Part shown: positions 4,161-23,687 of the stretch, piece by piece | Position numbering within the stretch: the stretch's first letter is position 1 | Layout: every line of letters starts with the position of its first letter | Source of the DNA: Wallemia ichthyophaga EXF-994 | Lineage: Eukaryota; Fungi; Basidiomycota | DNA: 32,000 nucleotides | Assembly (NCBI RefSeq): GCF_000400465.1 | Contig: NW_008806299.1 | Location: 56,646 to 88,645 of the forward strand | Reading direction: 5' to 3' | Notes under the pieces: generated by a model | The model's input: the letters and a program-made list of their open reading frames with translations, nothing else | Told to the model about the DNA's origin: nothing | Database searches by the model: none | Translations under genes and position numbers: made by a program

Positions 4161-6128
4161 ATGTTTTTCAAGGCTGAAGTAGCATTGTTAGCGCTGTTCA
4201 GTAGTAAAGGTGTGGGTGGACTCATGGGTGACTCGCCGGGCGGCCCCCCAATGCACGAAAAGAATGCAAATCAGGGTGTCAAAAAGATCACCCTCGAGGT
4301 CACTGAAATGGTTACAAGCTTAGATGGCGGGAAGCCACGAGAAATGTTCGCTATCAATGGCAGGCCGTTCAACGGCGCCGAACCAATCGTCGTTGACGAA
4401 GATGACGTGGTGGAGATAGATTACATAAATAATGCGCATACAAATACTACTCTCCACGCACATGGTATTACTCAAAGTGGTACAATATGGTCAGATGGAG
4501 TTCCAGGCGTGACTCAAACCTATATTGGAAGTGGTGAAAATTTCACGTATCAATGGAACGCGGAGTATGGAATGTATTGGTTGCATGATCACTCACGTGA
4601 GCAGTACCAAGATGGTATAGCTCTTCCAGTCTACGTCCGACCAAACGACAATCGTCCAAAGCCTTTCTATCAGCTCACAAACGACAATAACGCAATCGAG
4701 TCACTCGAAAAGCAAGACAGAGATCCGCAGATTATCATGCTGGCTGACTACACAACGCTTAACAGCACTGAACAGAAGCGATTGTCTGAAGAGTGGCATT
4801 CAGAATTACTATGTTACGACGCTGTACTCATTAACAACCATGGACGCAGAAATTGCCCAGCTATGGATAAGCTGAGAACGTATGCATCCGAAAATAAAAA
4901 TGGGCTGATTGATGGCTCCTACATCACCGCCAAAGGATGTCCGAACATTACAGAAAGCACTCCAGCAGTGCCTGACGATATAGAGCTCGATGCAGATGTG
5001 TGGTTTAACTGCGAGGAGACCAACACGACTACTCCAAAGTTTGAATTCGAGTATGTTGACGATGGCAATGAGCAATGGGCCGTCCTACATATGGTTTCCG
5101 CGGCTAGTCACTGGTCTTACATCGTTTCAATCGATGAGCATCCAGTTTATCTGTTTTCTCAAGACGGAAGATATCACAGCATGCCGTCTGCAGAGCCTGC
5201 CGATGCTTTTGAGTTTGTTATTGGAGAGCGTCTGGGAGTTGCTTTTAAATTACACACAGCAGGCGAATATGTAATGCGAGTATCTGTTTGGAACGCACCT
5301 CAGATTCTGGCAACACACGCAATCATCAGCTATGGTAATAACAACAACGTTCGCTACGTGAAGGAGGAAGGGCTTCCTGCGCTGCCTGATTCCAAGCCAA
5401 CTATTAACTACGGAGGTGGATTGGTTAAGGAGAACGCGACTGTTATACAATCAACTCAACTACGTGCATACGATGCGCCAAATGTACCCAAACCTCACGA
5501 GAAAGCTGACAAGACGCTAATTTTCACATTGCAATACGACGGGACGTTATACTGGGGTATGTCAGACGAGGGAGCTGTAGTTGAACGGTACAATATCACC
5601 GAAAAGCAGACCGCTGAGACACCTGCACTTTTCGATCTGGAGTCATACATTGGCTCGTCATCAACCGCTCACTACCCAGCCGGTAGCGTTGTAGACGTGG
5701 TGTTTGTCGTTAATGGAACAGTTCCTCAACCGCCTCACCCGATGCATTTCCATGGGCTTCACAGGCACTTGCTTGGTAGCGGTACTTTGGGGCTGATGAG
5801 CTGGAACTACACTGATGTGGCGGATTTCGATGCTCACAACCCTGATGCTATCAACTGGGAGGATCCAGCTTACGTCGACACGTTCAACACGCCATCTTCC
5901 ATGCCTGATGCACCCTCCTACCTCGTTACGCGCTTTGAAGCTGGAGAAGCAGAGCCTACGCTCTTACATTGTCACATTGGTTTGTGGAAGCTAATTTATC
6001 TCATTTTGTCTCACATTGTCTCAGGATCCCATAAAGCGGAAGGAATGGAATATCTTCTCATAGCGGAAGGAAAACAGCCTGAGATACCAGAATACTACAG
6101 AATCCAGGCCGGTCAAGTTGACTATTAG
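4161..6128 (+). CDS. Secreted laccase-like multicopper oxidase; join(4161..5979,6025..6128)
   Basis: Copper motifs HAHG, WLHDH, HPMHFHG and HCHIGSHKAEGM (the last after removing a 45-nt in-frame GTTTGT..CTAAT..CAG intron). Hydrophobic N-terminus. No C-terminal TM helix, so not Fet3-type. Confidence 0.92.
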   Translation: MFFKAEVALLALFSSKGVGGLMGDSPGGPPMHEKNANQGVKKITLEVTEMVTSLDGGKPREMFAINGRPFNGAEPIVVDEDDVVEIDYINNAHTNTTLHAHGITQSGTIWSDGVPGVTQTYIGSGENFTYQWNAEYGMYWLHDHSREQYQDGIALPVYVRPNDNRPKPFYQLTNDNNAIESLEKQDRDPQIIMLADYTTLNSTEQKRLSEEWHSELLCYDAVLINNHGRRNCPAMDKLRTYASENKNGLIDGSYITAKGCPNITESTPAVPDDIELDADVWFNCEETNTTTPKFEFEYVDDGNEQWAVLHMVSAASHWSYIVSIDEHPVYLFSQDGRYHSMPSAEPADAFEFVIGERLGVAFKLHTAGEYVMRVSVWNAPQILATHAIISYGNNNNVRYVKEEGLPALPDSKPTINYGGGLVKENATVIQSTQLRAYDAPNVPKPHEKADKTLIFTLQYDGTLYWGMSDEGAVVERYNITEKQTAETPALFDLESYIGSSSTAHYPAGSVVDVVFVVNGTVPQPPHPMHFHGLHRHLLGSGTLGLMSWNYTDVADFDAHNPDAINWEDPAYVDTFNTPSSMPDAPSYLVTRFEAGEAEPTLLHCHIGLWKLIYLILSHIVSGSHKAEGMEYLLIAEGKQPEIPEYYRIQAGQVDY

Positions 6129-6258: not shown

Positions 6259-7395
6259 TCAAAGCTTCGATGCTGCTATACCTTTGGGTGGGATTGGTGA
6301 CTGATCTTTGTCAAAATAGATCTGTTCGCCTGATCTGAAGGCCATCTGCAGACCTACACAGATTTTGCTTGCGATGTACGCGTCGTCAATTTCAAGCGGA
6401 AGAGGGGAATTGTCGAGCACAGCGCTGGTGAACTCCCTCATTTCGTTCGAGAATGCCTCTCTGAACCTATCGAAATAGTCTTGCGTTGTTTGCTTGCGAT
6501 ATCCATGCTCATCTGCAAGAGTGACACGGTTTATGGCACTGTCAATGTTGACCTTGATCATTCCATTCTCGCCCGTTATTTGCGCCCAGCATTCGTGTCC
6601 ATGGATTGCAGTTCTCGAGAGGTACAAGTTGGCAAGTTTGCCACTTTCGAAGACTACAGTAGCGACTGAGTTGTCAGCATCCTTAGACTCGGCTAATCCA
6701 TGCATTCTTGCATTGTAGCCTGCAGCAAACACCTTCTTGACCTTCTCATTTGGTCCCATGTACCACCTCATCAAGTCAACATCGTGAATCCCGCAATCGA
6801 CCAGTATTGATCCGCTAACCTTTGAATACCCGACAAAGAAATCAACAATCTCAGCGTTGTACTGGTCATTGGTGACGCCATAGTAGTGAAACACATCACC
6901 CAGCTCACCGCCCTTCACTCTGTTGAATGCTTCTCTGTAGCTTTCGTCGAAACGGCGAGACATACCCACCAAAATCTTGAGATGCGGATTCTTTTTGGCC
7001 TCTTCGACAACTGGTAGCGCATCGTCCAGGTTCACGGCTATGGGTTTTTCAAGCAACAGATGTTTACCTGCCTTGATAGCCTTCAGAGCGAGAATCGGAT
7101 GTTGGGTTGTGTCGCTAGCTACCAAGATGGCTTGGATGGATGGATCGTTGATGACATTTTCCTCGCTTGTGAAGCGCTTGACCTGCTCACCCAATACGGC
7201 CCTAGACGCTTCAAGGACCTCCGTGCGTGGGTCGGCCACGGCTACTAATTGAGCACGTGGCTCCTTCACCACCTGTACTGAATAGTATGAGTGTGTTGAA
7301 TAATTTAGTAGGGGTCTACGTACGTTTAAGGCATGTCTCATTCCCATTCTGCCGATGCCTAAAACGCCAAAGCGGAGTGTGTTGTTCGTAGTCAT
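6259..7395 (-). CDS. Gfo/Idh/MocA NAD(P)-dependent oxidoreductase (myo-inositol 2-dehydrogenase-like); exons 7395..7324 and 7272..6259
   Basis: Rossmann GVLGIGRMG, LLEKPIA, GMSRRFD and DCGIHDVD motifs. A 51-nt in-frame GTACGT..CAG intron sits at 7323-7273. Confidence 0.9.
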   Translation of the reverse strand: MTTNNTLRFGVLGIGRMGMRHALNVRRPLLNYSTHSYYSVQVVKEPRAQLVAVADPRTEVLEASRAVLGEQVKRFTSEENVINDPSIQAILVASDTTQHPILALKAIKAGKHLLLEKPIAVNLDDALPVVEEAKKNPHLKILVGMSRRFDESYREAFNRVKGGELGDVFHYYGVTNDQYNAEIVDFFVGYSKVSGSILVDCGIHDVDLMRWYMGPNEKVKKVFAAGYNARMHGLAESKDADNSVATVVFESGKLANLYLSRTAIHGHECWAQITGENGMIKVNIDSAINRVTLADEHGYRKQTTQDYFDRFREAFSNEMREFTSAVLDNSPLPLEIDDAYIASKICVGLQMAFRSGEQIYFDKDQSPIPPKGIAASKL

Positions 7396-7985
7396 TTGTG
7401 TCTTATTTTGTGTTAATAGTGCTTGAATGAAAAGATCGCATTTGGCAAGCTTGATTATATACGCATGATGTCACTCCGACGACCGGATAGAGCGGACTCA
7501 GCTTAGGTACAATTAATATGGGGAAAGCTTGAGCTATGTGGAGCACATTTGCTCATCGCTATAATTCTTTAGCAGGTCGTTGTAGATGTCAGACGCTAGA
7601 GGCGTCGGAGAGATCAACGAGCGTTGGGTATGGACCCCGTTCACCATGACGAGCATTGCAAGGAGTATATTCATGCCATTTATATTCAAGATTGCTTGAT
7701 TTGGATTTCCTGCAAAGATGGAAAAGGATGTGTCAAGTGTAGTAGATGCGATATTGATCTTAAGCAAAGCTTGCGTACATAATTTCACAATCAAAACCTA
7801 TCTATTGCATTTTACACTGACAATCTGGCGTTCTTTCTCGATAAGATAAGCCAAGATAGGTGAGTCATAAATGACCGAGTCATACAGCCTCAATTAAGCT
7901 GTTTATAGCAAATTCAAACCATCTGTCATCATCATGATACCTAACCATTATAAGTGTGAGTGCTGCTGAGTGCTGAGTTGGAATA

Positions 7986-8204
7986 ATGCGTTTACCCCCT
8001 TGCATCTCAGACAAAACTCACTTCTGCAACGTCTGCGAAATGAATTTTACTTACGAGCAGCTGATCATGCACCACTCTTTTGTAGAGAAATACCACTGCC
8101 CGCGGTGCAAGCATGGTTTCGCCAGTAAGAATGCGCTCGAACACCATCTCATTGATCATTACATGGGTGATCTGCAGTATGAAGATGAGTATCCACATGC
8201 TTAG
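7986..8204 (+). CDS. Small C2H2 zinc-finger ORF, possibly a truncated or degenerate gene
   Basis: CNVC..F....L..H (one residue short of consensus) and CPRC...F.....LEHHLIDH. Coding-like sequence continues downstream in another frame (8113..8433). Confidence 0.5.
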   Translation: MRLPPCISDKTHFCNVCEMNFTYEQLIMHHSFVEKYHCPRCKHGFASKNALEHHLIDHYMGDLQYEDEYPHA

Positions 8205-8989
8205 TCTGTGCATTAAGTCTATTTATTCCTCAATTCGGTTTTTAGTTACTGCGATACAATGTATCGATTCTCCACATTCTGGCCATTCTAATTGCTTAAT
8301 GATTTACCAAGAAACTCTCTCAGCTGCGTTTCCGTGGGTTGATAGCATCCGTCTATCTTCTCTCCTCTTTGGAAATAAAAATATGCTGGCAATGAGGACG
8401 CTGCACCCATCAAGTCAGATATGTAATCTGTAGGAGCGTTATGAGCGGGGCTCTTCATCCGAACACCACACCCACGGAATTTCATCCTGTTTATAGAGAA
8501 CTGTGGCTGTAAGAGAGAGTATGTGTACCGAAAGTAAATCACCCACAAATATGGCATTCTTCTCGTTTTCATTAGATATAGACTGTGGTGAGTGTGAGTA
8601 TGTATTTTCTGTGATCCAGTTTCGCACCTCGAACAAATCACCGCTGCATGTGATATGTGAGTCTGAGCCTATTAGCCACTCGCAACTCACGCCTCGTCAC
8701 TGAGTACGCGTATGCATTAGAAACGCGCCTCTCAAATAAACCCATCTCACCTGTCTCTAACTTCCACGATTACTGGCTTCTCTGCGATGAGCTGTTTCTA
8801 GAGTGAGAAGTGCCTTACAGAAGCCCACAGCACCCGCCATATGCTCCAGATCACTCTTGCTAACAACTGGATATACGCCCATCTTGAATGTTAGTTGTCG
8901 GTTTAAATGTTCAGTTGTGGGTTATCTCAAAATTGATATCACCTGCTAATATATTACATCATACAGTTACAAAGTAAAGAGTGTATAAG

Positions 8990-10135
8990 TTATTTTGATT
9001 TTGGCGTACTGGTGTGGCTTGGCTGGGTTGTAAGGGCATTGGGACTGTGGGAGTGGTGCTGTACACCATATAATCCGTTTGCACTCTCGCTATCTAGCAG
9101 GGAGTACTTTTTTTCGTTTACGTGTGTAGGCGGGGGCGTCTGCGGGTGCGGGAAGAAGGTATTAAGCGTGTTGAGTGAGGTTCGGCGGCTGCGATCCATG
9201 TGTGTAAATTCCAACTGATCTGAGTCGCCTGGCTTATCGCGTGACTTGTTTAATCCTAGATAATGGCTCAGAGCTGCGAGTATGTCTGCCTGTATGAGGA
9301 AGAGCGTGAATGCAATCAATCCGGTACTCGCAAATACGAGAGTTGACGACGTTTTTACTCCATCGTACCCTCGCAAGCTCCAGCAGTGCAAGGTGATGGA
9401 TGTGAGGGAATAGAAGAGGAAGAGGAGGATGCGCGCGGTGAGTTGAAGGTTCACTGACCAGTGCACTTTCACGAGTCCACGTTGGCTTGCACGTAGACGG
9501 ATGAGGATGCCTGCAAGCCAGAAGGCGAGTATCATCACCATTATCATGACGATGAGAGCTACTACGGTAGCGGCGATGTTGAGTGGTTCGTGCCTGCTGT
9601 CACAGTAGTAGGGCGTCCGATGTACCATAGACCGGTCATCGAGGAATACCCCCAGATATGCAAAGCTGTGGACGTGTGAGTAGCCGTGTTCCTTCTCTTG
9701 AAAGTAGACCCACAAAAAAGGAATGCCGACTGCATACGGGAAGATGACAAGCGTGATGTTGTCGAGATAATGTAGATATTTGGAGATTTTGGTCGAAGCT
9801 GCGATGTTGGTCGATACCCAGAACTTGGTGACGCACATAAGCGTCGTCGAGCTATTCATTACAGTGCCTGTGAGCCTAAACACAGCGTTGATTATTTGTA
9901 AGGATTTGGGCGGATGCGGATCTTCCATATGTTGCGTCCAGCAGAGGATAGCGTCGAACCACAGGGTGACCATGAAGATCAAGTAGAAGTTGATGAGGAC
10001 GCCGTGCTTGTGCAGCCGCTGCGACGCTAGTGTTAATATAAGTAGACATGCGTGCCCGACTGCTGCGATGATGAGAAGACTGTAATACGCCCTGAGATGG
10101 GTCGCGGTCGCTACGGGCTCTGGTTCTCTATCCAT
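8990..10135 (-). CDS. Orphan multi-pass (about 7TM) GPCR-like membrane protein; exons 10135..9714 and 9665..8990
   Basis: About seven hydrophobic segments, Cys in predicted extracellular loops (LCWT, PYYC) and a S/T/P-rich cytosolic tail. A 48-nt in-frame GTGGGT..CTCAC..CAG intron at 9713-9666 interrupts TM4. Confidence 0.75.
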   Translation of the reverse strand: MDREPEPVATATHLRAYYSLLIIAAVGHACLLILTLASQRLHKHGVLINFYLIFMVTLWFDAILCWTQHMEDPHPPKSLQIINAVFRLTGTVMNSSTTLMCVTKFWVSTNIAASTKISKYLHYLDNITLVIFPYAVGIPFLWVYFQEKEHGYSHVHSFAYLGVFLDDRSMVHRTPYYCDSRHEPLNIAATVVALIVMIMVMILAFWLAGILIRLRASQRGLVKVHWSVNLQLTARILLFLFYSLTSITLHCWSLRGYDGVKTSSTLVFASTGLIAFTLFLIQADILAALSHYLGLNKSRDKPGDSDQLEFTHMDRSRRTSLNTLNTFFPHPQTPPPTHVNEKKYSLLDSESANGLYGVQHHSHSPNALTTQPSHTSTPKSK

Positions 10136-10341: not shown

Positions 10342-11630
10342 GTGCGTAACGTGTTTCTGACCACCTCCCAATTTCCCGATATCCTCGATCAATGCATATC
10401 AAGTTAGTTACAAGGAAAAGGAGACTCGCTGGAGAATTACAAAAATCATTTTGGCGAGCATTATGCGGGTTCATGCTAGTTTATGCTTAATTCGAGTCTT
10501 TTGAGGTGGTGGAGATAGCGTTTAAGGGGTTGTGAATATATCGATGTAGATGACATTTACAATAGTTTAAGAGCTCAACAAAACCTCTAGACTACTTTCT
10601 GGCTTTCTCTGTAGCCTCCTTACTTTCTTTAGCGTGCTCGGCACTTTTTGACTCATTGATTGATTAGTGGAGCCAATTGGATACTGCTTATTCGCAACCA
10701 CAGAATTCTTGCATATTTGAATTCTAAAAGCATAATTGAATACATCATGCCTTTAATCCCTGCCAAATTTCTTTAGCGAAGCAACCGGCTTCTGATCGGC
10801 GTTAAACGGATTTACGACATTTCGGTGCTTTCAGATCAGGCATGCATCTAAGAACTGATATTTCATTGCTTAGCTGGACTTTCTTCACCTTTCAGAAGAC
10901 ATGTCGCTGAAAAATTCCTGTGAGCCGCAGTTGAAATTAATGTCACTATTTCGATGACATTTCCATCGTTGGCGAAGAGCGCTGAATATTGCGGCTCACT
11001 AGAGACAGTGTCAGCAGCGAATCTCTGAGGTTTAAACCTAAACACATTTCTGTTTGCACCTTGAAAACAGCACCTGCATTCAAATGTTGCATTGAACGCG
11101 TTGTCTGCGTTGGCCTCGCTGCACTCTTTGAGCTATCACACTTGCAGCAAGTAGTGCAGAAGTGTACATCATGCTCCTTTGAATTTCAATCGAAATACAG
11201 ATGATTTGCAGTTGCTGATACATTACGTCTCACTATAGACAAAGTAAAGTTTAATAGATGATAGCATTTTGATAGTTTGGCTGTGTGTTGAAGGCGATAT
11301 GAATATTTATTTTGCAAAAAACCCACAACACTAATATACCCCGTGATATCACAACGTTCCTTTTTCTGTGAAACAGGAACAATTTTGTCGCTAAAAAAGT
11401 CCGATTTCAATCTAATTTATTCTTGTCTTAGATGAACAAGCAGCTCAAAAGGTGATTTAGATACTTTATACTATATATCAGCCTCAGGAAGTGTCTACGG
11501 AGATGTAGATGCCCCAAATCGCTACACCTTTGCCTCGCCTCGGGTGTTTTGCGGAACCTATGGTTATGCAGGGAATTGAAAGAACAGTCTTATATATTAA
11601 AAAGCTAGGAACCTCCCCGCGTTTCTAGCG

Positions 11631-11638
11631 TATAAATA
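11631..11638 (+). promoter_or_regulatory. TATA box of small secreted protein 1
   Basis: TATAAATA lies 55 nt before ATG 11686, followed by a CT/CA-rich leader. The paralog has TATAAAA at the same spacing. Confidence 0.65.
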
Positions 11639-11685
11639 ACGCCTTCCACTTCTCCCTTCAAACCATCAACTCAACACTAACAACA

Positions 11686-12110
11686 ATGTTCAAGCTCATC
11701 ACTGTTTCAGCTCTTCTCTCAACCGTCGCTCTCGTCGCCGCTGGTGGCCCAGCTGAGGTTAGTTCGGTGTGAGGTGTTGAGCATTTCTAACTAGTCGTTA
11801 GGTCTGCACCAGCAGAGGCGGTGGCTGGTGAGTCTATAAATCTTTATCATGAACCTCTAACGCGCATACAGTGTCGAATACCAAAGTAAGTCAGCTCTAT
11901 ATGTTCATCAAAGCTGATGAGAATTTTTCTCTAGTCACCAAGGATTGCTGTGCAGCCGTAGATCAAAACACGCGCTTCGATGAAGTATTTCATCAATGCA
12001 TTCCTCTTCTTGCCAACGGTATTAACACAGGCGGTATGGTTGATTGCTGTGAGGGCAGAGGTGCCGGATCTCGCGAGGAAGAAATCGGCGCAGCAACCAG
12101 CGTCTGTTAA
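11686..12110 (+). CDS. Small secreted 8-Cys protein SSP1, 95 aa; join(11686..11757,11802..11827,11872..11885,11935..12110)
   Basis: Spliced product MFKLITVSALLSTVALVAAGGPAEVCTSRGGGCVEYQITKDCCAAVDQNTRFDEVFHQCIPLLANGINTGGMVDCCEGRGAGSREEEIGAATSVC. Signal peptide, three GT-AG introns (44, 44, 49 nt), and the structure is validated by the paralog. Confidence 0.9.
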
Positions 12111-12309
12111 GCACGCTAGAACACAAATGCGCAATAAAAACGGATAAATTGTGTATTCTTTTCCCTAGATATATTTTATCGTGACTTTACAACATTTTAG
12201 GTGTAATTGGTGTTAATTATAAAACTAAAACTTAAACCCGAAAAATCTGAATTAAGATGCTAGAGCAAACCATTTCACAAATTTCGACAAGTTGATGCTA
12301 TTTAATAAA

Positions 12310-13010
12310 AATAGACATGCTAGAATGCTATCGGGGCGGAGTATAAGAGCGCGTTGACGGTACATGCGGTAGTGCAACACAAGGCCATTTTCTACCTACC
12401 CGATGCAAGCAGTGAGGGTACGTAGACGCAGATAAGAATTAGATCGAACGTTTGTCGCATAATTTTTGCGATCCAAGTTGTTCGAACTTAGAAGAACAGA
12501 TACTACTACACTTGATCTAAGCCAAAAGGCCAGAGGGATGGCAAATGAGAATGAATGGAGGCGCTTTTATACGCCCAGAGTAATCGTAGCGTTTAGTGCG
12601 GTTGTGATGTTGTAGAAAGGAATAAGAATGAAGATGCATCGAGATTAATTATACTGAAATGCTCCTGTTAGCTTGCTATTCAGGTTATTGCGACAATAAT
12701 GAGCAGAATCAATCCCAAAATCACAATCTGAAGGCCTTTTCGATAAAGGCAAAGACCTCCTCAGTCAGACTCTCGGAACCAATTCGTCCAAATCGAACGA
12801 AGAGAACAAAGAGCAAGCCAAGACTATAGCTGAGGGAACTACCGATCAGGCTAAAGGCAAAGGAGAATCTATCTTCGGGACTTTGTTCGGTAATCGCTTC
12901 ACAGAACCAAACGGTGTTGCCAAGGTGTGTTTTAGGTTGTGTTGACACTTGTTTGTTAACACTTACGCACAACAGGAAACCAAAGGTGAGGCTTAGGAGC
13001 ACTTTCAAGT
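12310..13010 (-). pseudogene. Degenerate multi-pass membrane protein relic
   Basis: ORF 12721..13008 (hydrophobic SLIGSSLSYSLGLLFVLFV). After a frameshift, a long frame continues as VILGLILLIIVAIT*...LRLLWAYK...FDLILICVYVPSLLA with several stops. Boundaries are approximate. Confidence 0.4.
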
Positions 13011-13612
13011 TGCCTCATATAACATTACTGCTACTATTTTAAAACTATAATGCATTGACAGCCTCTTGGTTTAAGCCATAATGTGAAGCTGTGCATGATA
13101 AAATACGGCTACTTACAATCCACATATCAGTGTCACCTGATAGCTCAAAGTCTGACTAGACTTTGACATTTTTGCCACACATGCTCGTCATCAACTGACT
13201 CTGAGGATCATTTCGTCGATGTTTTACCCTGAAATATTATCGAGAAAGTCTCGATTTAATATCTCATATTCTTTAATAGATCGTGAAAGGAATTTTTTGG
13301 GATTTTTTTTGCCATGTTCATGCGTAATAAATGCGCAAAATACCCCACATTTCTAAAAATTCCGAACGCCGCTTCAACAGTCTTTCTTGAACGCGCTGAA
13401 GGACTTAAAAGGACTTTATAAACGCTCCTATTAAAGTGAGGCTTGAAAAATGTTTATTTTGTCCTTCTATGAACAGCAAACATTAATTGATTTTGCACTT
13501 GTCGCTTCAGAACCGACTGGGCAACTTTTCGTTGAATTCGGTGGATTTAGTCAATTATTTGTGCATAAATTAACCATAGTCACCTGAAGTCACTCAACCT
13601 TATTCATTGGAG

Positions 13613-13619
13613 TATAAAA
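13613..13619 (+). promoter_or_regulatory. TATA box of small secreted protein 2
   Basis: TATAAAA lies 57 nt before ATG 13670, a position conserved with SSP1. Confidence 0.65.
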
Positions 13620-13669
13620 TGCAGGCCTTCTCACCTTCTTTATTCTCGTACCATCACAAGCAAATAACA

Positions 13670-14159
13670 ATGTACAAACTCGCTACACTCTCAGCTCTTC
13701 TTTCAGCGATTGCGCTCGTCGCAGCTGGCGGTCCAGAAATCTGCACAGGTTCAGGCGGATGGTAGGTGTTCAACATGTTGAAGTAAGAGACAGTGCTAAC
13801 TTCCACGTAATTAGCACTGAGTATCAAAGTGAGTTGGCTAAAAAGTGACAATTTTTGCTGATGGGGCTTTACCCTTCCTAGTAACGAAGGATTGTTGCGC
13901 TGCAGTTGGTGAGCGAACCTTTGAATATATTAAGACATGATTTTAACTCTCACGCCAGATCAATCAGCAAGATTCGACGAGCTTTTGAAGCAATGTGTGC
14001 CGTGAGTCTGAATTTTTACTAGCAGCCATAAGATGTCTTATGGCTAATGAAAGATATGGCGTCAACTCTATCGACACGGGAGCAATGGTCAGCTGCTGCG
14101 AAAGCAGAGGCGCCGGTAGCAGTGCAGAAAGCTTTGGAGCTGACAACCCAACCTGTTAA
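13670..14159 (+). CDS. Small secreted 8-Cys protein SSP2, 93 aa; join(13670..13761,13815..13828,13882..13908,13959..14001,14054..14159)
   Basis: Spliced product MYKLATLSALLSAIALVAAGGPEICTGSGGCTEYQITKDCCAAVDQSARFDELLKQCVPYGVNSIDTGAMVSCCESRGAGSSAESFGADNPTC. Four GT-AG introns (53, 53, 50, 52 nt). About 65% identical to SSP1 by hand alignment (62/95). Confidence 0.9.
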
Positions 14160-14577
14160 GCGAGCTAGTCGCAATCATTAAAGAGATCGACGGAAAATCT
14201 CAAACGGAATCAATTGTATACTTCTCTCAACATGACTCAAATTTATCTTCATTCCAAAAAAAAAAATACTTACATTTGCGTATTCAAGTGAGTTTAAGAA
14301 ATTTCGGAGATGGAGGTAGGCTGTCATGTATATGTGCTCGTGTTTCGCAAATCGCGGTACATTTCGCAATTACCATGCTATAGAAATTTCATGATCTGTA
14401 TAATACATTTTTAATACGCTAAGGGAATTATGAGTCAAGAAACGCTTCCAGTAAATTCGGCACCCCCTTTGACTCCTCATGCTTTAGGAAGTATTGATGG
14501 ACGCATTGATTGACGCAGTCTTAAATATGTATCGTCTTAACACTTTATTCAGATTTCATCATTGAGGGGCCTATGAG

Positions 14578-15013
14578 CTACTTAGCTTCGGGAATTTCTG
14601 CAACGCATTTGATTACTTGGTCTACATATTGAATTTCTTTAGCTTTATCATCTGGAATTTCTCTGAAATAGGTGCATAAGAGGGTATGGGGGACTAAAAA
14701 CCACCAATCACATAGAATACTCATTTTCAATAGACATAAGTATTTCAGCCACATCTAAGCCATTCAAACCTAAATTGTCTTTAAAGGCAGAATCAGAACG
14801 TATCTATGAAGATAATGAGTATGCTACCATACAGGCTAAACATATGTCTCACCCTATCACCATTAACCTGATTGAATAACTTTAAAAGGAAACTTCTGCA
14901 TTGGATTTCGGCCTTTGAGAGGGCGCCACTAGCGTAAAGTCGGAATTGTTGGACTTGAAGACGCTCGCCGGCATTGCTATTTTGTTGATCAAGCCAAATT
15001 GTAATCTTAACAT
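14578..15013 (-). pseudogene. Mitochondrial-type acyl carrier protein paralog lacking the phosphopantetheine Ser (probable pseudogene); exons 15013..14853, 14803..14712, 14662..14578
   Basis: Spliced mature region RLYASGALSKAEIQCRSFLLKLFNQVNGDR-IRSDSAFKDNLGLNGLDVAEILMSIENEYSI-EIPDDKAKEIQYVDQVIKCVAEIPEAK* matches the mtACP/NDUFAB1 pattern (LGLDSLD..E..M..E.EF.IEIPD). It has two 49-nt introns. The presequence-like MLRLQFGLINKIAMPASVFK from ATG 15013 is out of frame by 1 nt. Confidence 0.8.
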
Positions 15014-16320: not shown

Positions 16321-17621
16321 CTACTGCAACTCGACACCTGAATCCGATACTTCTTGGGTTTGTTTCAGTTCAGCCATACGGCTAGCTCTGCCCCTGCTGT
16401 CTTTGTAGAAGACAATATCTCCTTGGTCTTCGACAAAAACGCAATCGCGGTAGGTCTTGTATAGTGAGACAAAGAAATTCTCGTCCGAGTAGTTGTAATG
16501 AGGTCCGAGATAAGTTTTGAGTGCATCTGTCGCCTTCCAGGCATTATAGTGTGGTATTTTTGAGCAAACATGATGAGCAATATGGGTTTCGCAAATGCCA
16601 TGCAATATATAGGTACCGACTGGACCCATAAACACTCTGTCGATGGTGCAGAGAGCGCCTCTCTGGAAGTTCCACAGACCATCCCGGTAGCGAGGTACAC
16701 TCGGGTCAGTGTGCTGCAAGAATGTGACACTGACCAACCAGCAGTTTACCCAGAGATATGGTATGAGATAGTGGAACACGACCTCGCGGAATCCTCTCTG
16801 CTGTCCCCAAACAAAAAGCCCCAGTAGTACTCCTGCAATACCTACATCAGACAGCACAACCTGACCAAAGTGGCGCGTATCAAAGATTGCAGCATATGGG
16901 TTAAAGTGACTGGTCCACTTTGGATAGCGCTGGCCCGATACATTCATGAGGAGATATAGCGGCCATCCAACGAGCTGCTGAATGAGGAGATTGAGGAGTA
17001 CCACCAGCGGCGCGTCTTCGAGGACCTCTGAAAGTCTTAGCTGCTCCTCTTCCGGCACATCGACACCAGTGACGACGTTTTCGTCTGCATTTTCGTAGTC
17101 TAGCGTCAAAGCTCTAGTTTCAGAACGCGTCTGTGGAACGAAGACTTGATCTTTGTTCATGTGTCCAATACCAGCGTGGTGTTTTGCGTGGCTTATTTTC
17201 CAGCTATAGTAGGGGACGAGGAGGATGGAATGAAGAATAAATCCGACCATGTTGTTGATATATTTACGGTTGGAGTAGGCGTAATGGCCGCATTCATGTG
17301 CCAGCACCCACAATCCAGTAAACGACAGGCCCTGAGCGAACCAGAAAAAGGACCACAGCGCAGATGATACAACTGAGGAGGTGTAATATCCACCTGAAAG
17401 CTGAGTTAGGTATGGAATGTACACGCTTCCCTTGATTAGCAAGCCACTTAGTAAAACATTCTGTAAGACATATCGACTCGACTTAATTGCTGAACGCTGA
17501 AAACACTCCTTCCTGTGGCAAATAACGTTAGCATTCACCCGGGTAAAAGCTTAGAGACACACGGGATTGCCCCTATTAAGTCTTTGATTGTGATCTGTGG
17601 AAGGGTGAATTTTTCGACCAT
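16321..17621 (-). CDS. FAD2: Delta-12 (omega-6) fatty acid desaturase; exons 17621..17563 and 17512..16321
   Basis: His boxes HECGH, HAKHH and HIAHH, plus TFLQHTDP and RGALCTIDR. A 50-nt GTGTGT..CTAAC..CAG intron restores MVEKFTLPQITIKDLIGAIPKECFQRS. Confidence 0.95.
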
Positions 17622-19292: not shown

Positions 19293-20303
19293 ATGTCTAC
19301 AAAATCTGTAATTAACTGGGCATCCAAAGACGGTGAATTCAGGTGAGAATAGATTATCATAACGTTGCTACATACTCACCTCACATAGACGACAAACGTC
19401 CGCTTTCAGAGACGCCATAAAGAGTGGCACACAATTCGAACCACAGAGCAACCGCTACCATCTAGTCGTCTCTTATGCCTGTCCGTGGGCACACAGGGCG
19501 CTCATTACCCGTGCTCTCAAAGGTCTACAGGCCTTTTTGCCTTACAGCGTTGTCCACCCGTTCCTTGGCGAGAAAGGCTGGTCGTTCGATAAAGACTTTC
19601 CTGGCTCAACTGGCTGTCTTATTGAAGGCGCTCAAGCAACTCAGTAGGTCACTCCAACTACTCTCACTATTTCTCACATTACGTCAGCTTACGTGATCTA
19701 TATTTCACAGCGAACAAAGATTACGACGCACGATTCACCGTGCCAATCATTTGGGATAAGCAGCAGAACACCATCGTATCCAACGAATCCTCAGAAATAA
19801 TTCGCTTCCTCAACGACTTGAACACCACCGGCGGCGACCTTTATCCAGATCATTTGAAAAGCGAGATTGACGAGCTCAATGAGTGGGTATACCATACCGT
19901 AAACAACGGCGTGTACAAGTCTGGCTTCGCTACGACGCAGCAAGCTTATGAGAACAATGTCAAGCCATTGTTCGCATCTCTTGATAGGCTGGAGGCTATT
20001 TTGTCAGATGGGAGAGACTTTTTGGTCGGTGGTCAGCTCACAGAGGCTGATATCAGGCTGTTCACTACGATTATACGCTTCGATCCAGTTTATGTGGGTC
20101 ATTTCAAATGCAACCTCGGCAGCATCAGACACAACTACCCACACATCAACACCTGGATGAAGAAGTTGTATTGGAAGAACGACGCCTTCAAGTCCACCAC
20201 TAACTTTGAACACATCAAATTCCACTACTACAACTCGCACCGCCAGATAAATGGTACTGGAGTTGTGCCACTTGGTCCAAACCCAAACATTGAGCCACTT
20301 TGA
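19293..20303 (+). CDS. ECM4: Glutathionyl-hydroquinone reductase / Xi(omega-like)-class GST, 306 aa; join(19293..19342,19389..19643,19688..20303)
   Basis: WASKDGEFRRQTSAFR, RYHLVVSYACPWAHR, RFTVPIIWD, NESSEIIR, VNNGVYKSGFA, RFDPVYVGHFKCN and HIKFHYY motifs. Two GT-AG introns (46, 44 nt). Confidence 0.93.
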
Positions 20304-21554: not shown

Positions 21555-23687
21555 ATGAATACAAACGTCAGCGCTTCCAAGAAGCCTAAGATTAATCGAG
21601 CTTGTGACTCGTGCAGAAAGAAGAAAGCGCGCTGCGATGCACCCCAAACCTTCCCAAACCAGTGCAGCAACTGCAAAGAAGGAGAATGCACTTTCAATAA
21701 TCCAGCACCTAAGAAAGGCGTACCGCAGCGCTACGTTAACGATTTAGAAGCAAAGGTGAGCCACGAAACATCATATTGACCCCTCTCACACCCACAGCTC
21801 GAGCGGTACGAGGCGACATTCGGCCCATTACCACCAAGCGCAATGAGTGATGGAAGTCCATCCAGCGAAGGTTCCCACAAACGTAAATTCGAGCGCAGTA
21901 ACCGCGACAATCGCGACACTGAATCACTGACGGAGAAAATGAGCGCTCTCTTCTTCAAACCTGACGATGAACCAGTAAAAGACAATGAAAAGGAACGGAC
22001 GAGATGTTTTGGAAAATCGTCGATGAAAGGTATCGTCAAGCGCATCACCCTCCATGCCGATTTCACAGCTTTAGATCTGAACACTGAGATGAGATCTAGA
22101 TTCTGGAATGAAGAATTCATCACGCAGACTATGCGGCACTCTCAAGCGCCCTACACGCATGATGATTTTGGTGACCAAAATCTCATGTATGAACTAATAA
22201 ACGCGTATTTCGATAAGGTGAACGTTACACTACCTCTTCTTAACCGTGAGCGATTTGTTCTCGACATACCAAAACACAAACTGGAGCGTAGTTTTGGTAG
22301 CTTATTGATTATGGTCTGCGCACTCGGTTCACAGCACATGTTGATGGGCGATAAGAGGGTTTTAATACCAGGTAGAGAAGATACTCAATTCCTGGCTGGA
22401 CATCAATTCTATTTGATAGCACGGGAAAAATTCATTGATCAAATAAGCACTGTAGCCTCGCTACAAGACGTCCAAGCAATGATTCTGATGCAGCTGTATG
22501 TGCAGAATGGGTTGTATCCCAAAAGTAGCTGGTTAATTTCAGGAAATGCCATGCTTTTGGCTCAAGATATTGGTCTCAATATCAAATGGAACGACTCAAA
22601 GGAAGACAGTTACCAACAGGAATCTCGAAACAGGGCGATGTGGGCGTTGTTTATCCTTGATACATCTAATTCAGCTGCACTCGGCCGCTTTCAGCTGATC
22701 AGCTACGACGACATCAATTTGGATTTACCCTCTGAAATCGAGACAGATTCTAAAAGTCGACTTAGTGTGCGCTACATGAACCAATCCATCAAACTCTACA
22801 AAATCGTCCAAGACATTTTGAAATCTATCTATTGGTTGAAAAGCAATGAGAAAGAAGGCTATAAAGTGTCTTACAATGATATTGCATCATTAAACTCCAG
22901 ATTGAACGGGTGGTACAATAAACTTCCATCGGAGCTGCGCGATGCGAAAAAATCTGATGACGAAGAGGTTTTCCAAATGAAGTGTTATTTGAAGATCGCG
23001 TATCACACATCACAGAGCTACATCTACAAATCCTTCCTTCCCGATCCCTCATCTGCGGAATTTAGCACTTTCCGCCTTACCAGTCTTTTTATTTGCTTGA
23101 ATGACTCTCGCACTATAATTTCAATTTTCGACGATATTCAGCGGGCAGGCACAAACTCTCGTGGATTGTGTCACAGTAATTGTTTTTTAGGCTGGTCGAC
23201 TTTCTCCGCCTGCTTGATTTTGGTATTATGCTTTTGCGAAAGCCGTAAAAATGGTGACCTCAATAAGAATGATTTGGAGTACATTCAGAAAGGCATTCAA
23301 GTGTTGAGGAAAATGGAGGCGCGTGATTTAATTATGGGAAGAGCGGTGGATATGATTCTACAGCTTGTGATTAAAGCGGAGGTTCCACTCGATCATCTAT
23401 TCCTGAAAAATCAATGGAACTTGTCAAACAATATCAACCCTGATCAGGCTCACGAATATCTATTTAAATCGCAACTCACCTTTCCTTACGTGGACAATCA
23501 TGTTCAAGAAAACCACGTTTCTGACGTCATGGACTTCAACTTCGATCAATTTGATGCAGGGCTGGGAGGCACTGAAGCCTTGAATGCGTTAATGCCATCT
23601 CTTGATTCGCGTGAGGACGACTGGAGCGCTTTGCTAAGTACTGTCTTTGACGGTAGCAGCTTTAACACTGTCAACAATGTCGCATAG
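21555..23687 (+). CDS. Zn(II)2Cys6 transcription factor with Fungal_trans middle homology region; join(21555..21755,21798..23687)
   Basis: RACDSCRKKKARC..CSNCKEGEC followed by a coiled coil (YVNDLEAKLERYE) across a 42-nt GTGAGC..CAG intron. MHR motifs: YFDKVN..LPLL, DIGL, ESRNRAMWALFILD..ALGR. Confidence 0.92.

Follow-up and report, generated by a model that had tools for sequence, protein, structure and literature searches.

Tandem DUF5948 genes in Wallemia ichthyophaga, a halophilic fungus, code for small cysteine-rich secreted proteins with a predicted KP6-type fold, one of them strongly salt-induced

Wallemia ichthyophaga is a basidiomycete and an obligate halophile, the most halophilic of fungi. 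The window analyzed here, a 32,000-nucleotide (nt) stretch of the genome of strain EXF-994, is 100% identical to scaffold KE007249.1 over 20.5 kb, and it extends to the final base of this scaffold (88,645 bp). It carries, on the same strand, two genes for small secreted proteins with eight cysteines: gene 1 (11686–12110), with three introns and a product of 95 residues, and gene 2 (13670–14159), with four introns and a product of 93 residues. Both models were obtained by reading positions 11200–14700 and splicing the exons by script. All seven introns are bounded by GT and AG, measure 44–53 nt, and contain branch sites resembling CTAAC, CTGAT, or CTAAT, and both reading frames are uninterrupted. 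Because each gene contains a 14-nt micro-exon, the two appear as mere fragments in a mechanical list of open reading frames (ORFs); the splice models and that list together bear out the impression of an earlier sequence-only reading that micro-exons make the pair nearly invisible in the ORF track. A tblastn search of the window returned genes 1 and 2 alone, with no third copy.

Exon 1 of gene 1 (11686–11757, +) encodes the signal peptide MFKLITVSALLSTVALVAA, with cleavage predicted before GGP, and the first mature residues; its product is the N-terminus of the deposited protein J056_002799. Exon 2 (11802–11827, +; 26 nt), placed by the splice model and DNA alignment, carries Cys1, and the micro-exon that follows (exon 3, 11872–11885, +) encodes Cys2-V-E-Y-Q and matches uninterrupted coding sequence of W. 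hederae and W. mellicola. Exon 4 (11935–12110, +) runs from TKDCC to the terminal cysteine and a TAA stop. In gene 2, the signal peptide and Cys1 lie together on exon 1 (13670–13761, +; product corresponding to J056_002800 / P0008). The micro-exon (exon 2, 13815–13828, +) encodes Cys2-T-E-Y-Q, exon 3 (13882–13908, +; 27 nt) encodes ITKDCCAAV, and exon 4 (13959–14001, +; 43 nt) encodes DQSARFDELLKQCV, all three placed by the splice model and DNA alignment, and exon 5 (14054–14159, +) continues via MVSCCESRGAGS to the terminal cysteine and a TAA stop. The two genes also share flanking features, as first noticed from the letters alone. Motif scan and inspection of the sequence place a TATA box containing TATAAA 55 nt 5′ of the ATG in gene 1 (TATAAATA, 11631–11638, +) and 57 nt 5′ in gene 2 (TATAAAAT, 13613–13620, +), and the sequence after the stop codon follows a common pattern, TAAGC..GCTAG (TAAGCACGCTAG and TAAGCGAGCTAG). 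The 600 nt upstream of either gene contained no informative STRE, CRE, or HSE stress element.

The splicing has independent support. The gene 2 product is identical to the deposited protein J056_002800 / EOQ98847 and to the published GME4675_g, and residues 1–93 of the gene 1 product are identical to J056_002799, so the micro-exon junctions had been called independently. In a five-way DNA alignment, every intron of genes 1 and 2 is a clean gap relative to the one-intron genes of W. hederae and, equally, relative to the intronless copy of W. mellicola. We conclude that the gene pair and its features are real, far beyond chance. The 14-nt micro-exons have nonetheless corrupted many deposited models of this gene family: the W. 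ichthyophaga population-genome models P0001, P0002, P0006, P0015, P0020, and P0031 are mis-spliced at them.

The deposited model of gene 1 presents a separate problem. J056_002799 (612 nt, 203 residues) can be rebuilt exactly from seven exons, and its first three introns are those of our gene 1 model. Past residue 93, it leaves out the final two codons of gene 1 (V-C) together with the stop and takes in two elements that lie outside the DUF5948 family described below, an extra exon (12324–12417, +) and a CsbD-like ORF (12707–12924 + 12976–12996, +; Pfam CsbD E 1.2e-5, below the cut-off). The fusion requires introns of 222 and 289 nt, compared with 44–53 nt for the others at the locus, and the CsbD-like ORF is not present at the compared loci of W. 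hederae and W. mellicola. The W. hederae orthologues are stand-alone proteins of 95 residues that end in V-C. Because of the outsized introns, the loss of the conserved terminal cysteine, and these stand-alone orthologues, we judge the 203-residue J056_002799 to be a probable chimera and the stand-alone 95-residue form to be the probable main product of gene 1. The CsbD-like ORF, which lies between genes 1 and 2, lacks its own in-frame start codon.

Both precursors begin with a predicted 19-residue signal peptide in a secretory-type N-terminus (M-x-K, a hydrophobic stretch, and V-A-A before GGP), in which AGGP is kept in relatives, and the mature proteins of about 75 residues have masses of 7.5–7.8 kDa. 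The eight-cysteine spacing proposed at the outset, C-x6/5-C-x8-CC-x15-C-x15-CC-x18-C with the chain ending on the last cysteine, is exact in both. The two proteins are identical at 62 of 95 positions (65%; E 5e-44), including the stretch EYQITKDCCAAVDQ, in agreement with the identity of about 65% and the invariant core described earlier. The net acidity noted then also holds as a count (11 D/E versus 5 K/R, pI 4.4, in one protein and 10 versus 4, pI 4.1, in the other; pI, isoelectric point), but it is not specific to this halophile: homologues from non-halophilic agarics have pI values of 4.3–4.7, which rules acidity out as a halophile signature, and across the wider family pI ranges from 4.1 to 9.2.

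Both proteins belong to a catalogued family. They match Pfam PF19373 (DUF5948, a family of unknown function) at 75.6 bits (E 3.3e-21; gene 1, exon 4) and 67.6 bits (E 1e-18; gene 2, exon 5), well above the gathering threshold of 23.7 bits. Both matches cover profile positions 2–69/70, and nothing else of note matched. The family-wide residues are present in both: the C..CC..C..CC series, with TKD preceding its first CC and R-G-x-G-S following its second. All 52 of the 52 aligned relatives match DUF5948 and no other family. Because the match is to a DUF, the pair has no strong match to a characterized Pfam family. The proposal of an uncharacterized family thus stands with respect to function, as DUF5948 is a DUF for which we found no functional study, but not in the sense of an unrecognized family, as it is already catalogued as PF19373. 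In the searchable literature, DUF5948 is mentioned only in a candidate-effector table, which lists a single member, and no functional study turned up in literature searches for DUF5948/PF19373, accession numbers, the Ustilago maydis orthologues, and killer toxins or proteomes of Wallemia.

DUF5948 is a small family, judging by the relatives recovered: 27 by word-indexed search, 112 by profile search of 90%-identity clusters, and 68 (E ≤0.001) by profile search of 1.84 billion representative proteins. The named members are mainly from Basidiomycota, among them Wallemia. Others are from Agaricomycetes (Marasmius, Paramarasmius, Agaricus, Stereum, Lyophyllum, Cylindrobasidium, and Crepidotus) and Ustilaginomycotina (U. 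maydis UMAG_11002 and UMAG_11444, Sporisorium, Pseudozyma, and Testicularia), and a few are from Ascomycota (Metarhizium, Microthyrium, Trichodelitschia, and Septoria).

The alignment of relatives indicates how the eight cysteines should be read. The CC doublets are invariant across 52–67 relatives, and Cys25, Cys57 (gene 2 numbering), and TKD are at least 90% conserved. The second cysteine and the C-terminal cysteine, by comparison, are both present in 23 of 52 relatives, both absent in 25, and discordant in 4 (Fisher p 4e-10, n=52, a value not corrected for phylogeny). Because these two come and go together, we take the core of DUF5948, on the evidence of the alignment, to be six cysteines, best parsed as C-x14-CC followed by C-x15-CC. 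In the subgroup that comprises Wallemia and agarics, an extra disulfide probably connects the C-terminus with the loop that follows strand 1; in members of the Metarhizium type, a fifth pair of cysteines co-occurs as well. This parsing departs from two suggestions of the sequence-only reading. The division into two CC-x15/18-C modules plus an N-terminal cysteine pair fails because the family conserves six cysteines and dispenses with the second and last, and the idea of a relocated hydrophobin cysteine finds no support in the six-cysteine core. In a test for internal duplication of the domain, half-profiles compared by hhalign fell in register on C...CC, though at a probability of only 3% (E 0.014). 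Beyond the cysteines, the motifs QxTKDCC, F-[ND]-E, NxVxTG, and MVxCCxSRGxGS span Basidiomycota to Ascomycota.

Several members of the family are labeled "Hydrophobin" or [quoted passage not shown] in UniRef, and these names would make the pair aberrant hydrophobins or CFEM proteins. Beyond the names, what speaks for such an assignment is that the proteins are small and secreted with eight cysteines that include two CC doublets. The cysteine order of the pair (C-C-CC-C-CC-C) is, however, not that of hydrophobins (C-CC-C-C-CC-C), and CFEM domains have eight single cysteines without CC doublets, whereas the family as a whole conserves six cysteines. Neither PF01185, PF06766, nor PF05730 matched the pair at E up to 10 or any of the 52 relatives at E up to 0.01, while the true W. 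ichthyophaga hydrophobins GME4356 and GME837, taken from a table of the genome paper (PMC3849046) and used as positive controls, matched PF01185 at 56–67 bits. An hhalign comparison of the DUF5948 profile with those hydrophobins gave a probability of 0.08%. The predicted fold also differs, being a two-helix α/β sandwich rather than a β-barrel, and no hydrophobin was among the Foldseek matches listed for the model described below. We conclude that membership of the hydrophobin or CFEM families is refuted, that an aberrant form of either is extremely improbable, and that, judged by the sequences, the UniRef names are wrong for DUF5948 members. The original view that these small secreted proteins are neither hydrophobin, CFEM, nor plant 8CM proteins is thus upheld, with no such Pfam match for the pair or the 52 relatives.

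We modeled the gene 2 product with AlphaFold2 from the 52-sequence alignment and obtained a mean predicted local distance difference test score (pLDDT) of 77.4 and a predicted template modeling score of 0.65. The five models ranged from 75.5 to 77.4 in pLDDT, with values of 82–91 over most of the mature part. A model made from 14 sequences (pLDDT 60, no match in the Protein Data Bank (PDB) by Foldseek) was discarded in favor of this one. The predicted elements are strand 23–26, helix 34–43, strand 48–51, strand 56–59, helix 67–76, and strand 80–83, a β-α-β-β-α-β order. In a Foldseek search of the PDB, ranks 1–3 were all the α or β subunit of KP6, the killer toxin of Ustilago maydis virus: 1kp6 (KP6 α; probability 1.00, template modeling (TM) score 0.60 normalized to the query and 0.69 to the target), 4gvb_A (KP6 α; probability 1.00), and 4gvb_B (KP6 β; probability 0.99, root-mean-square deviation 2.0 Å over 65 columns). 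Target-normalized TM scores to the two subunits were 0.65–0.69. The comparison with killer-toxin folds that had been suggested from sequence thus returned KP6 as the best structural match of the predicted model. In the KP6 fold, one face of a four-stranded sheet is covered by two helices, in an arrangement with two β-α-β split crossovers (PMC12382754), and the disulfides link β1 to H2 and H1 to β3 (PMC12382754, de Guillen et al. 2025). The modeled element order matches that of KP6 (β1-H1-β2-β3-H2-β4), and the invariant cysteines of the model fall on β1 (C25), H1 (C40/C41), β3 (C57), and H2 (C73/C74). We therefore consider it probable, with good confidence, that the proteins are members of DUF5948 with a KP6-type fold. 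In a viral structure library, the best three matches of the same model were uncharacterized proteins of about 80–120 residues (probability 0.92–1.00): W8W1F8 (IIV22, 25% identity) and G0T528 (Wiseana iridescent virus), both from invertebrate iridescent viruses, and A0A7G7S0H7. It may be that insect viruses encode further small proteins of KP6-like shape.

After a clear drop below KP6, the Foldseek matches to the PDB continued with generic HMA or ferredoxin-like domains, and because HMA metallochaperone domains share the β-α-β-β-α-β order and the proteins are acidic, we considered an extracellular metal- or cation-binding role for such a fold. We regard this role as very unlikely. The HMA matches reach a probability of at most 0.54 and TM scores of about 0.4–0.5, and the β1-H1 loop contains neither CxxC nor GMxCxxC. 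The even number of cysteines and their pairwise co-occurrence point to disulfides in a secreted protein, and charge is not conserved across the family.

Genes 1 and 2 have no DNA similarity detectable by blastn outside the first 67 coding bases, and of their introns two are common to both genes, while gene 1 has one of its own and gene 2 has two. This divergence and the differing intron sets argue for an old duplication. Between Wallemia species, synonymous sites are saturated, dN is 0.06–0.3, and omega is 0.06–0.26 where computable. We thus read the two genes as old tandem paralogues that are both under purifying selection. Within the genus, both the number of copies and their introns change rapidly, as W. 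hederae shows. That species has three adjacent gene-1-type genes (95, 105, and 95 residues), of which the two 95-residue genes have one intron each, and, on another contig, two gene-2-type genes 5.6 kb apart (family loci L004 9104–12605 and L003 1787–8573). W. mellicola CBS 633.66 has at least four identical intronless copies of 98 residues in inverted orientation (JH668224.1, locus 6564–8579), at a locus that is syntenic with the window in that GFO_IDH_MocA and Fungal_trans genes neighbor both. These copies are interrupted by runs of N, and the deposited proteins of 176 and 191 residues are joins across the gaps; we accordingly discarded these apparent two-domain proteins as analogues of the KP6 α-β precursor. 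In Wallemia, Marasmius, and Ustilago, the family occurs as multiple, clustered copies, a state that is common for secreted conflict genes.

Published RNA-seq at 10% and 30% NaCl confirms massive expression of the pair, gene 1 being represented within the 612-nt model GME4674_g (PMC3849046). Gene 2 (GME4675_g) is the first row of Table S4, whose rows are ordered by reads per kilobase per million mapped reads (RPKM) at 30% NaCl, and is thus the top transcript at that salinity. It rose from 14,249 reads (2,582 RPKM) at 10% NaCl to 337,715 reads (59,657 RPKM) at 30% NaCl, a log2 ratio of 4.53 or 23-fold, while the second transcript at 30% NaCl stood at 21,994 RPKM, about 2.7 times lower (PMC3849046). 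Calculated from the table, the share of gene 2 at 30% NaCl is about 1.7% of the mapped reads, which number roughly 20 million. GME4674_g had 12,808 RPKM at 10% and 14,657 RPKM at 30% NaCl, where it ranks fifth (PMC3849046), and because this model is chimeric, its signal cannot be apportioned to gene 1 and the CsbD-like part. GME4749_g, a third paralogue at another place in the genome, rises 28-fold but stays at a low level (PMC3849046). In Table S6, the pair is annotated simply as "similar to HP," and the sections of the main text that treat hydrophobins, transporters, and metabolic enzymes leave it unmentioned (PMC3849046). Literature searches with the accession numbers of the pair found no paper.

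These expression data bring forward a close rival to a killer-toxin-like role, in which the pair would be salt-induced cell-surface or matrix proteins that act in the manner of hydrophobins or cerato-platanins without belonging to either. They would be secreted in bulk, kept non-covalently in the thickened wall or in the extracellular matrix of multicellular clumps, and would, at high NaCl, change the permeability or hydration of the wall or the adhesion of cells. We hold this to be somewhat unlikely. In its favor are the rank and induction of gene 2 at 30% NaCl, the place of the neighboring unit GME4674_g in the top five at both salinities, and the resemblance of the proteins in size, cysteine content, and acidity to the hydrophobins of W. 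ichthyophaga. In the passages of the genome paper that concern the salt response, the cell wall is held to be central (PMC3849046). Purifying selection and conserved polar motifs likewise suggest a conserved interaction of a housekeeping type. Against such a role, neither protein sequence has a glycosylphosphatidylinositol signal, a Ser/Thr-rich or PIR-type wall-linking region, or an N-glycosylation sequon, the grand average of hydropathicity is negative, and the characterized relatives of the fold are toxins or effectors rather than wall proteins.

Our leading interpretation, held tentatively and at somewhat less than an even chance when taken whole, is that the pair are secreted, disulfide-stapled proteins of the KP6 fold that act outside the cell, most likely as antimicrobials. 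Each gene would give rise to a precursor and then to an acidic, non-enzymatic mature protein that folds into a compact KP6-type α/β sandwich. The cysteines on β1, H1 (the first CC), β3, and H2 (the second CC) would staple the helices to the sheet, and an accessory disulfide would tie the β1-H1 loop to the C-terminal cysteine. In the published RNA-seq, gene 2 is the salt-responsive copy, and gene 1 lies in a constitutively very highly expressed transcription unit. Outside the cell, the proteins would bind a conserved cell-surface target without catalysis, and the fungus would use the secreted pair as an antimicrobial against competitors in brine. Both UmV-KP6 and Zt-KP6-1 inhibit fungal growth (PMC12382754). 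We place antimicrobial activity first among the possible functions because these two antifungal proteins are the only ones with the KP6 fold that have a measured activity of their own, and we counted the clustering and multi-copy state of the family in its favor. By analogy with them, a killer-toxin-like role against competing microbes in brine is a serious possibility, but one that we would still not call the probable outcome.

Several observations weigh against this interpretation. The Foldseek E-values for KP6 (0.017–0.05) lie above 0.001, Zt-KP6-1 was not among the 50 best matches listed, and the comparison starts from a predicted rather than a solved structure. Profile searches of all PDB sequences with 15- and 67-sequence alignments recovered no KP6 at E up to 10 and revealed no sequence homology to any other solved structure; homology to KP6 is therefore unproven. 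The link, as the model suggests it, is structural, with common descent possible, and the KP6 fold class stays open to DUF5948 because the fungal KP6 families are themselves defined structurally. Even a secure fold does not by itself give function, as the KP6 fold also occurs in the non-toxic effectors SIX5, AvrLm10A, and BAS4 (PMC12382754). The pI values of 4.1–4.4 are unlike those of classical cationic antifungal proteins; given the family range of 4.1–9.2, any activity would be target-specific rather than cationic membrane disruption. Purifying selection is strong, and TKDCC, NxVxTG, and CCxSRGxGS are kept from Basidiomycota to Ascomycota, which is not the arms-race pattern of many toxins. 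Finally, expression in axenic culture at about 1.7% of the mapped reads is just as compatible with a structural surface protein.

The effectors just mentioned suggest a further alternative, that the Wallemia proteins are helpers similar to SIX5 or AvrLm10A that bind a partner encoded by a neighboring gene, or that the two paralogues pair with each other as KP6 α and β do. The KP6 fold includes effectors with partners encoded by neighboring genes (PMC12382754), KP6 itself acts as an α/β pair of similar folds, and the Wallemia paralogues are adjacent, in a family that is clustered in other species as well. Because they are regulated very differently, however, one 23-fold induced and the other constitutive, the products of genes 1 and 2 are not kept in a fixed proportion, and W. 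ichthyophaga has no plant host. We consider a helper role improbable.

A different reading is that DUF5948 is a deeply conserved cellular branch of the KP6 fold whose extracellular task is of a housekeeping kind and not killing, which we rate as unlikely yet not negligible. If it is true, the salt-induced paralogue would be a principal extracellular factor of haloadaptation and a new use of the scaffold. The sections of the genome paper on ion transport and compatible solutes describe no unusual traits and indicate the cell wall instead (PMC3849046). In a related reading, DUF5948 may be the stock from which the U. maydis virus took KP6; U. maydis itself carries the members UMAG_11002 and UMAG_11444.

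Around the pair, the deposited annotation places a multicopper oxidase (4161–6128, +), a GFO_IDH_MocA oxidoreductase (6259–7395, −), and two unnamed genes (8415–8882 and 8990–10135, both −) on one side and a GST (19293–20303, +) and a Fungal_trans transcription factor (21555–23687, +) on the other. A delta-12 fatty-acid desaturase (GME4676_g, Pfam FA_desaturase, about 16321–17621, −) lies tail-to-tail with gene 2. In the published table, this desaturase is also salt-induced (log2 2.44, 30% versus 10% NaCl), and thus two adjacent genes respond to salt.

None of the underlying items is new: the genes had already been deposited, Pfam contains the family, and a published supplement gives the expression values. 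What we add are corrected gene models, including the recognition of a probable chimera, a six-plus-two cysteine architecture, and the assignment of DUF5948 to the KP6 fold, which, as a prediction, is the first structural hypothesis for the family (the KP6 inventory in the supplement of PMC12382754 lies outside this comparison). The transcript that ranks first at 30% NaCl, previously annotated as "similar to hypothetical protein," thereby gains a family, a probable KP6-type fold, and correct models, and the largest investment of the fungus in brine becomes a directly testable protein. A salt-stable, disulfide-locked scaffold of 7.5 kDa could also be of biotechnological interest.

Compared with known systems, genes 1 and 2 are full members of DUF5948, with the same motifs and six-cysteine core, and the Wallemia and agaric subgroup differs from that core by the extra fourth cysteine pair, formed by the loop cysteine and the C-terminal cysteine. 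The class I hydrophobins of W. ichthyophaga, described in the hydrophobin section of the genome paper as 26 acidic proteins by gene count, half of them salt-responsive (PMC3849046), are likewise small, secreted, eight-cysteine, and acidic, and some are salt-induced. They differ in cysteine order, in profile (with no similarity), and in predicted fold, and two salt-induced hydrophobins listed beside gene 2 in Table S6 reach only 7 and 12 RPKM at 30% NaCl, compared with 59,657 for gene 2. Hydrophobins conserve little beyond the cysteine pattern, and the genome paper notes low similarity between species (PMC3849046), whereas DUF5948 conserves non-cysteine motifs. The surface-active hyphosphere proteins (HFS; PMC8596622) are also a fungal family of small secreted eight-cysteine proteins separate from hydrophobins. 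Their pattern, C-CXXXC-C-C-C-C-C, has single cysteines only, they are described in Pezizomycotina, and membership of the pair in HFS is ruled out by the cysteine pattern.

The likeness to KP6, as far as the predicted structure carries it, is that of small secreted disulfide-rich proteins with two helices, a four-stranded sheet, and cysteines on the elements that carry the KP6 staples; in both systems two related chains, subunits in KP6 and paralogues in Wallemia, stand side by side. There is no detectable sequence similarity, and the CC doublets and the conserved set of polar motifs belong to the Wallemia pair. KP6 is a viral preprotoxin that is cut into two chains, whereas the Wallemia proteins are encoded by chromosomal genes and have their own signal peptides. 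KP6 α has an N-terminal hydrophobic helix; the Wallemia proteins have only 5–6 mature residues before Cys1, which lies in β1. Zt-KP6-1 and the fungal KP6 superfamilies (PMC12382754) are nearer in being chromosomally encoded and secreted and in occurring in Ascomycota and Basidiomycota, including saprophytes. Zt-KP6-1 differs in having two disulfides, but, like the Wallemia pair, it lacks the N-terminal helix, and it is active as a single chain (PMC12382754).

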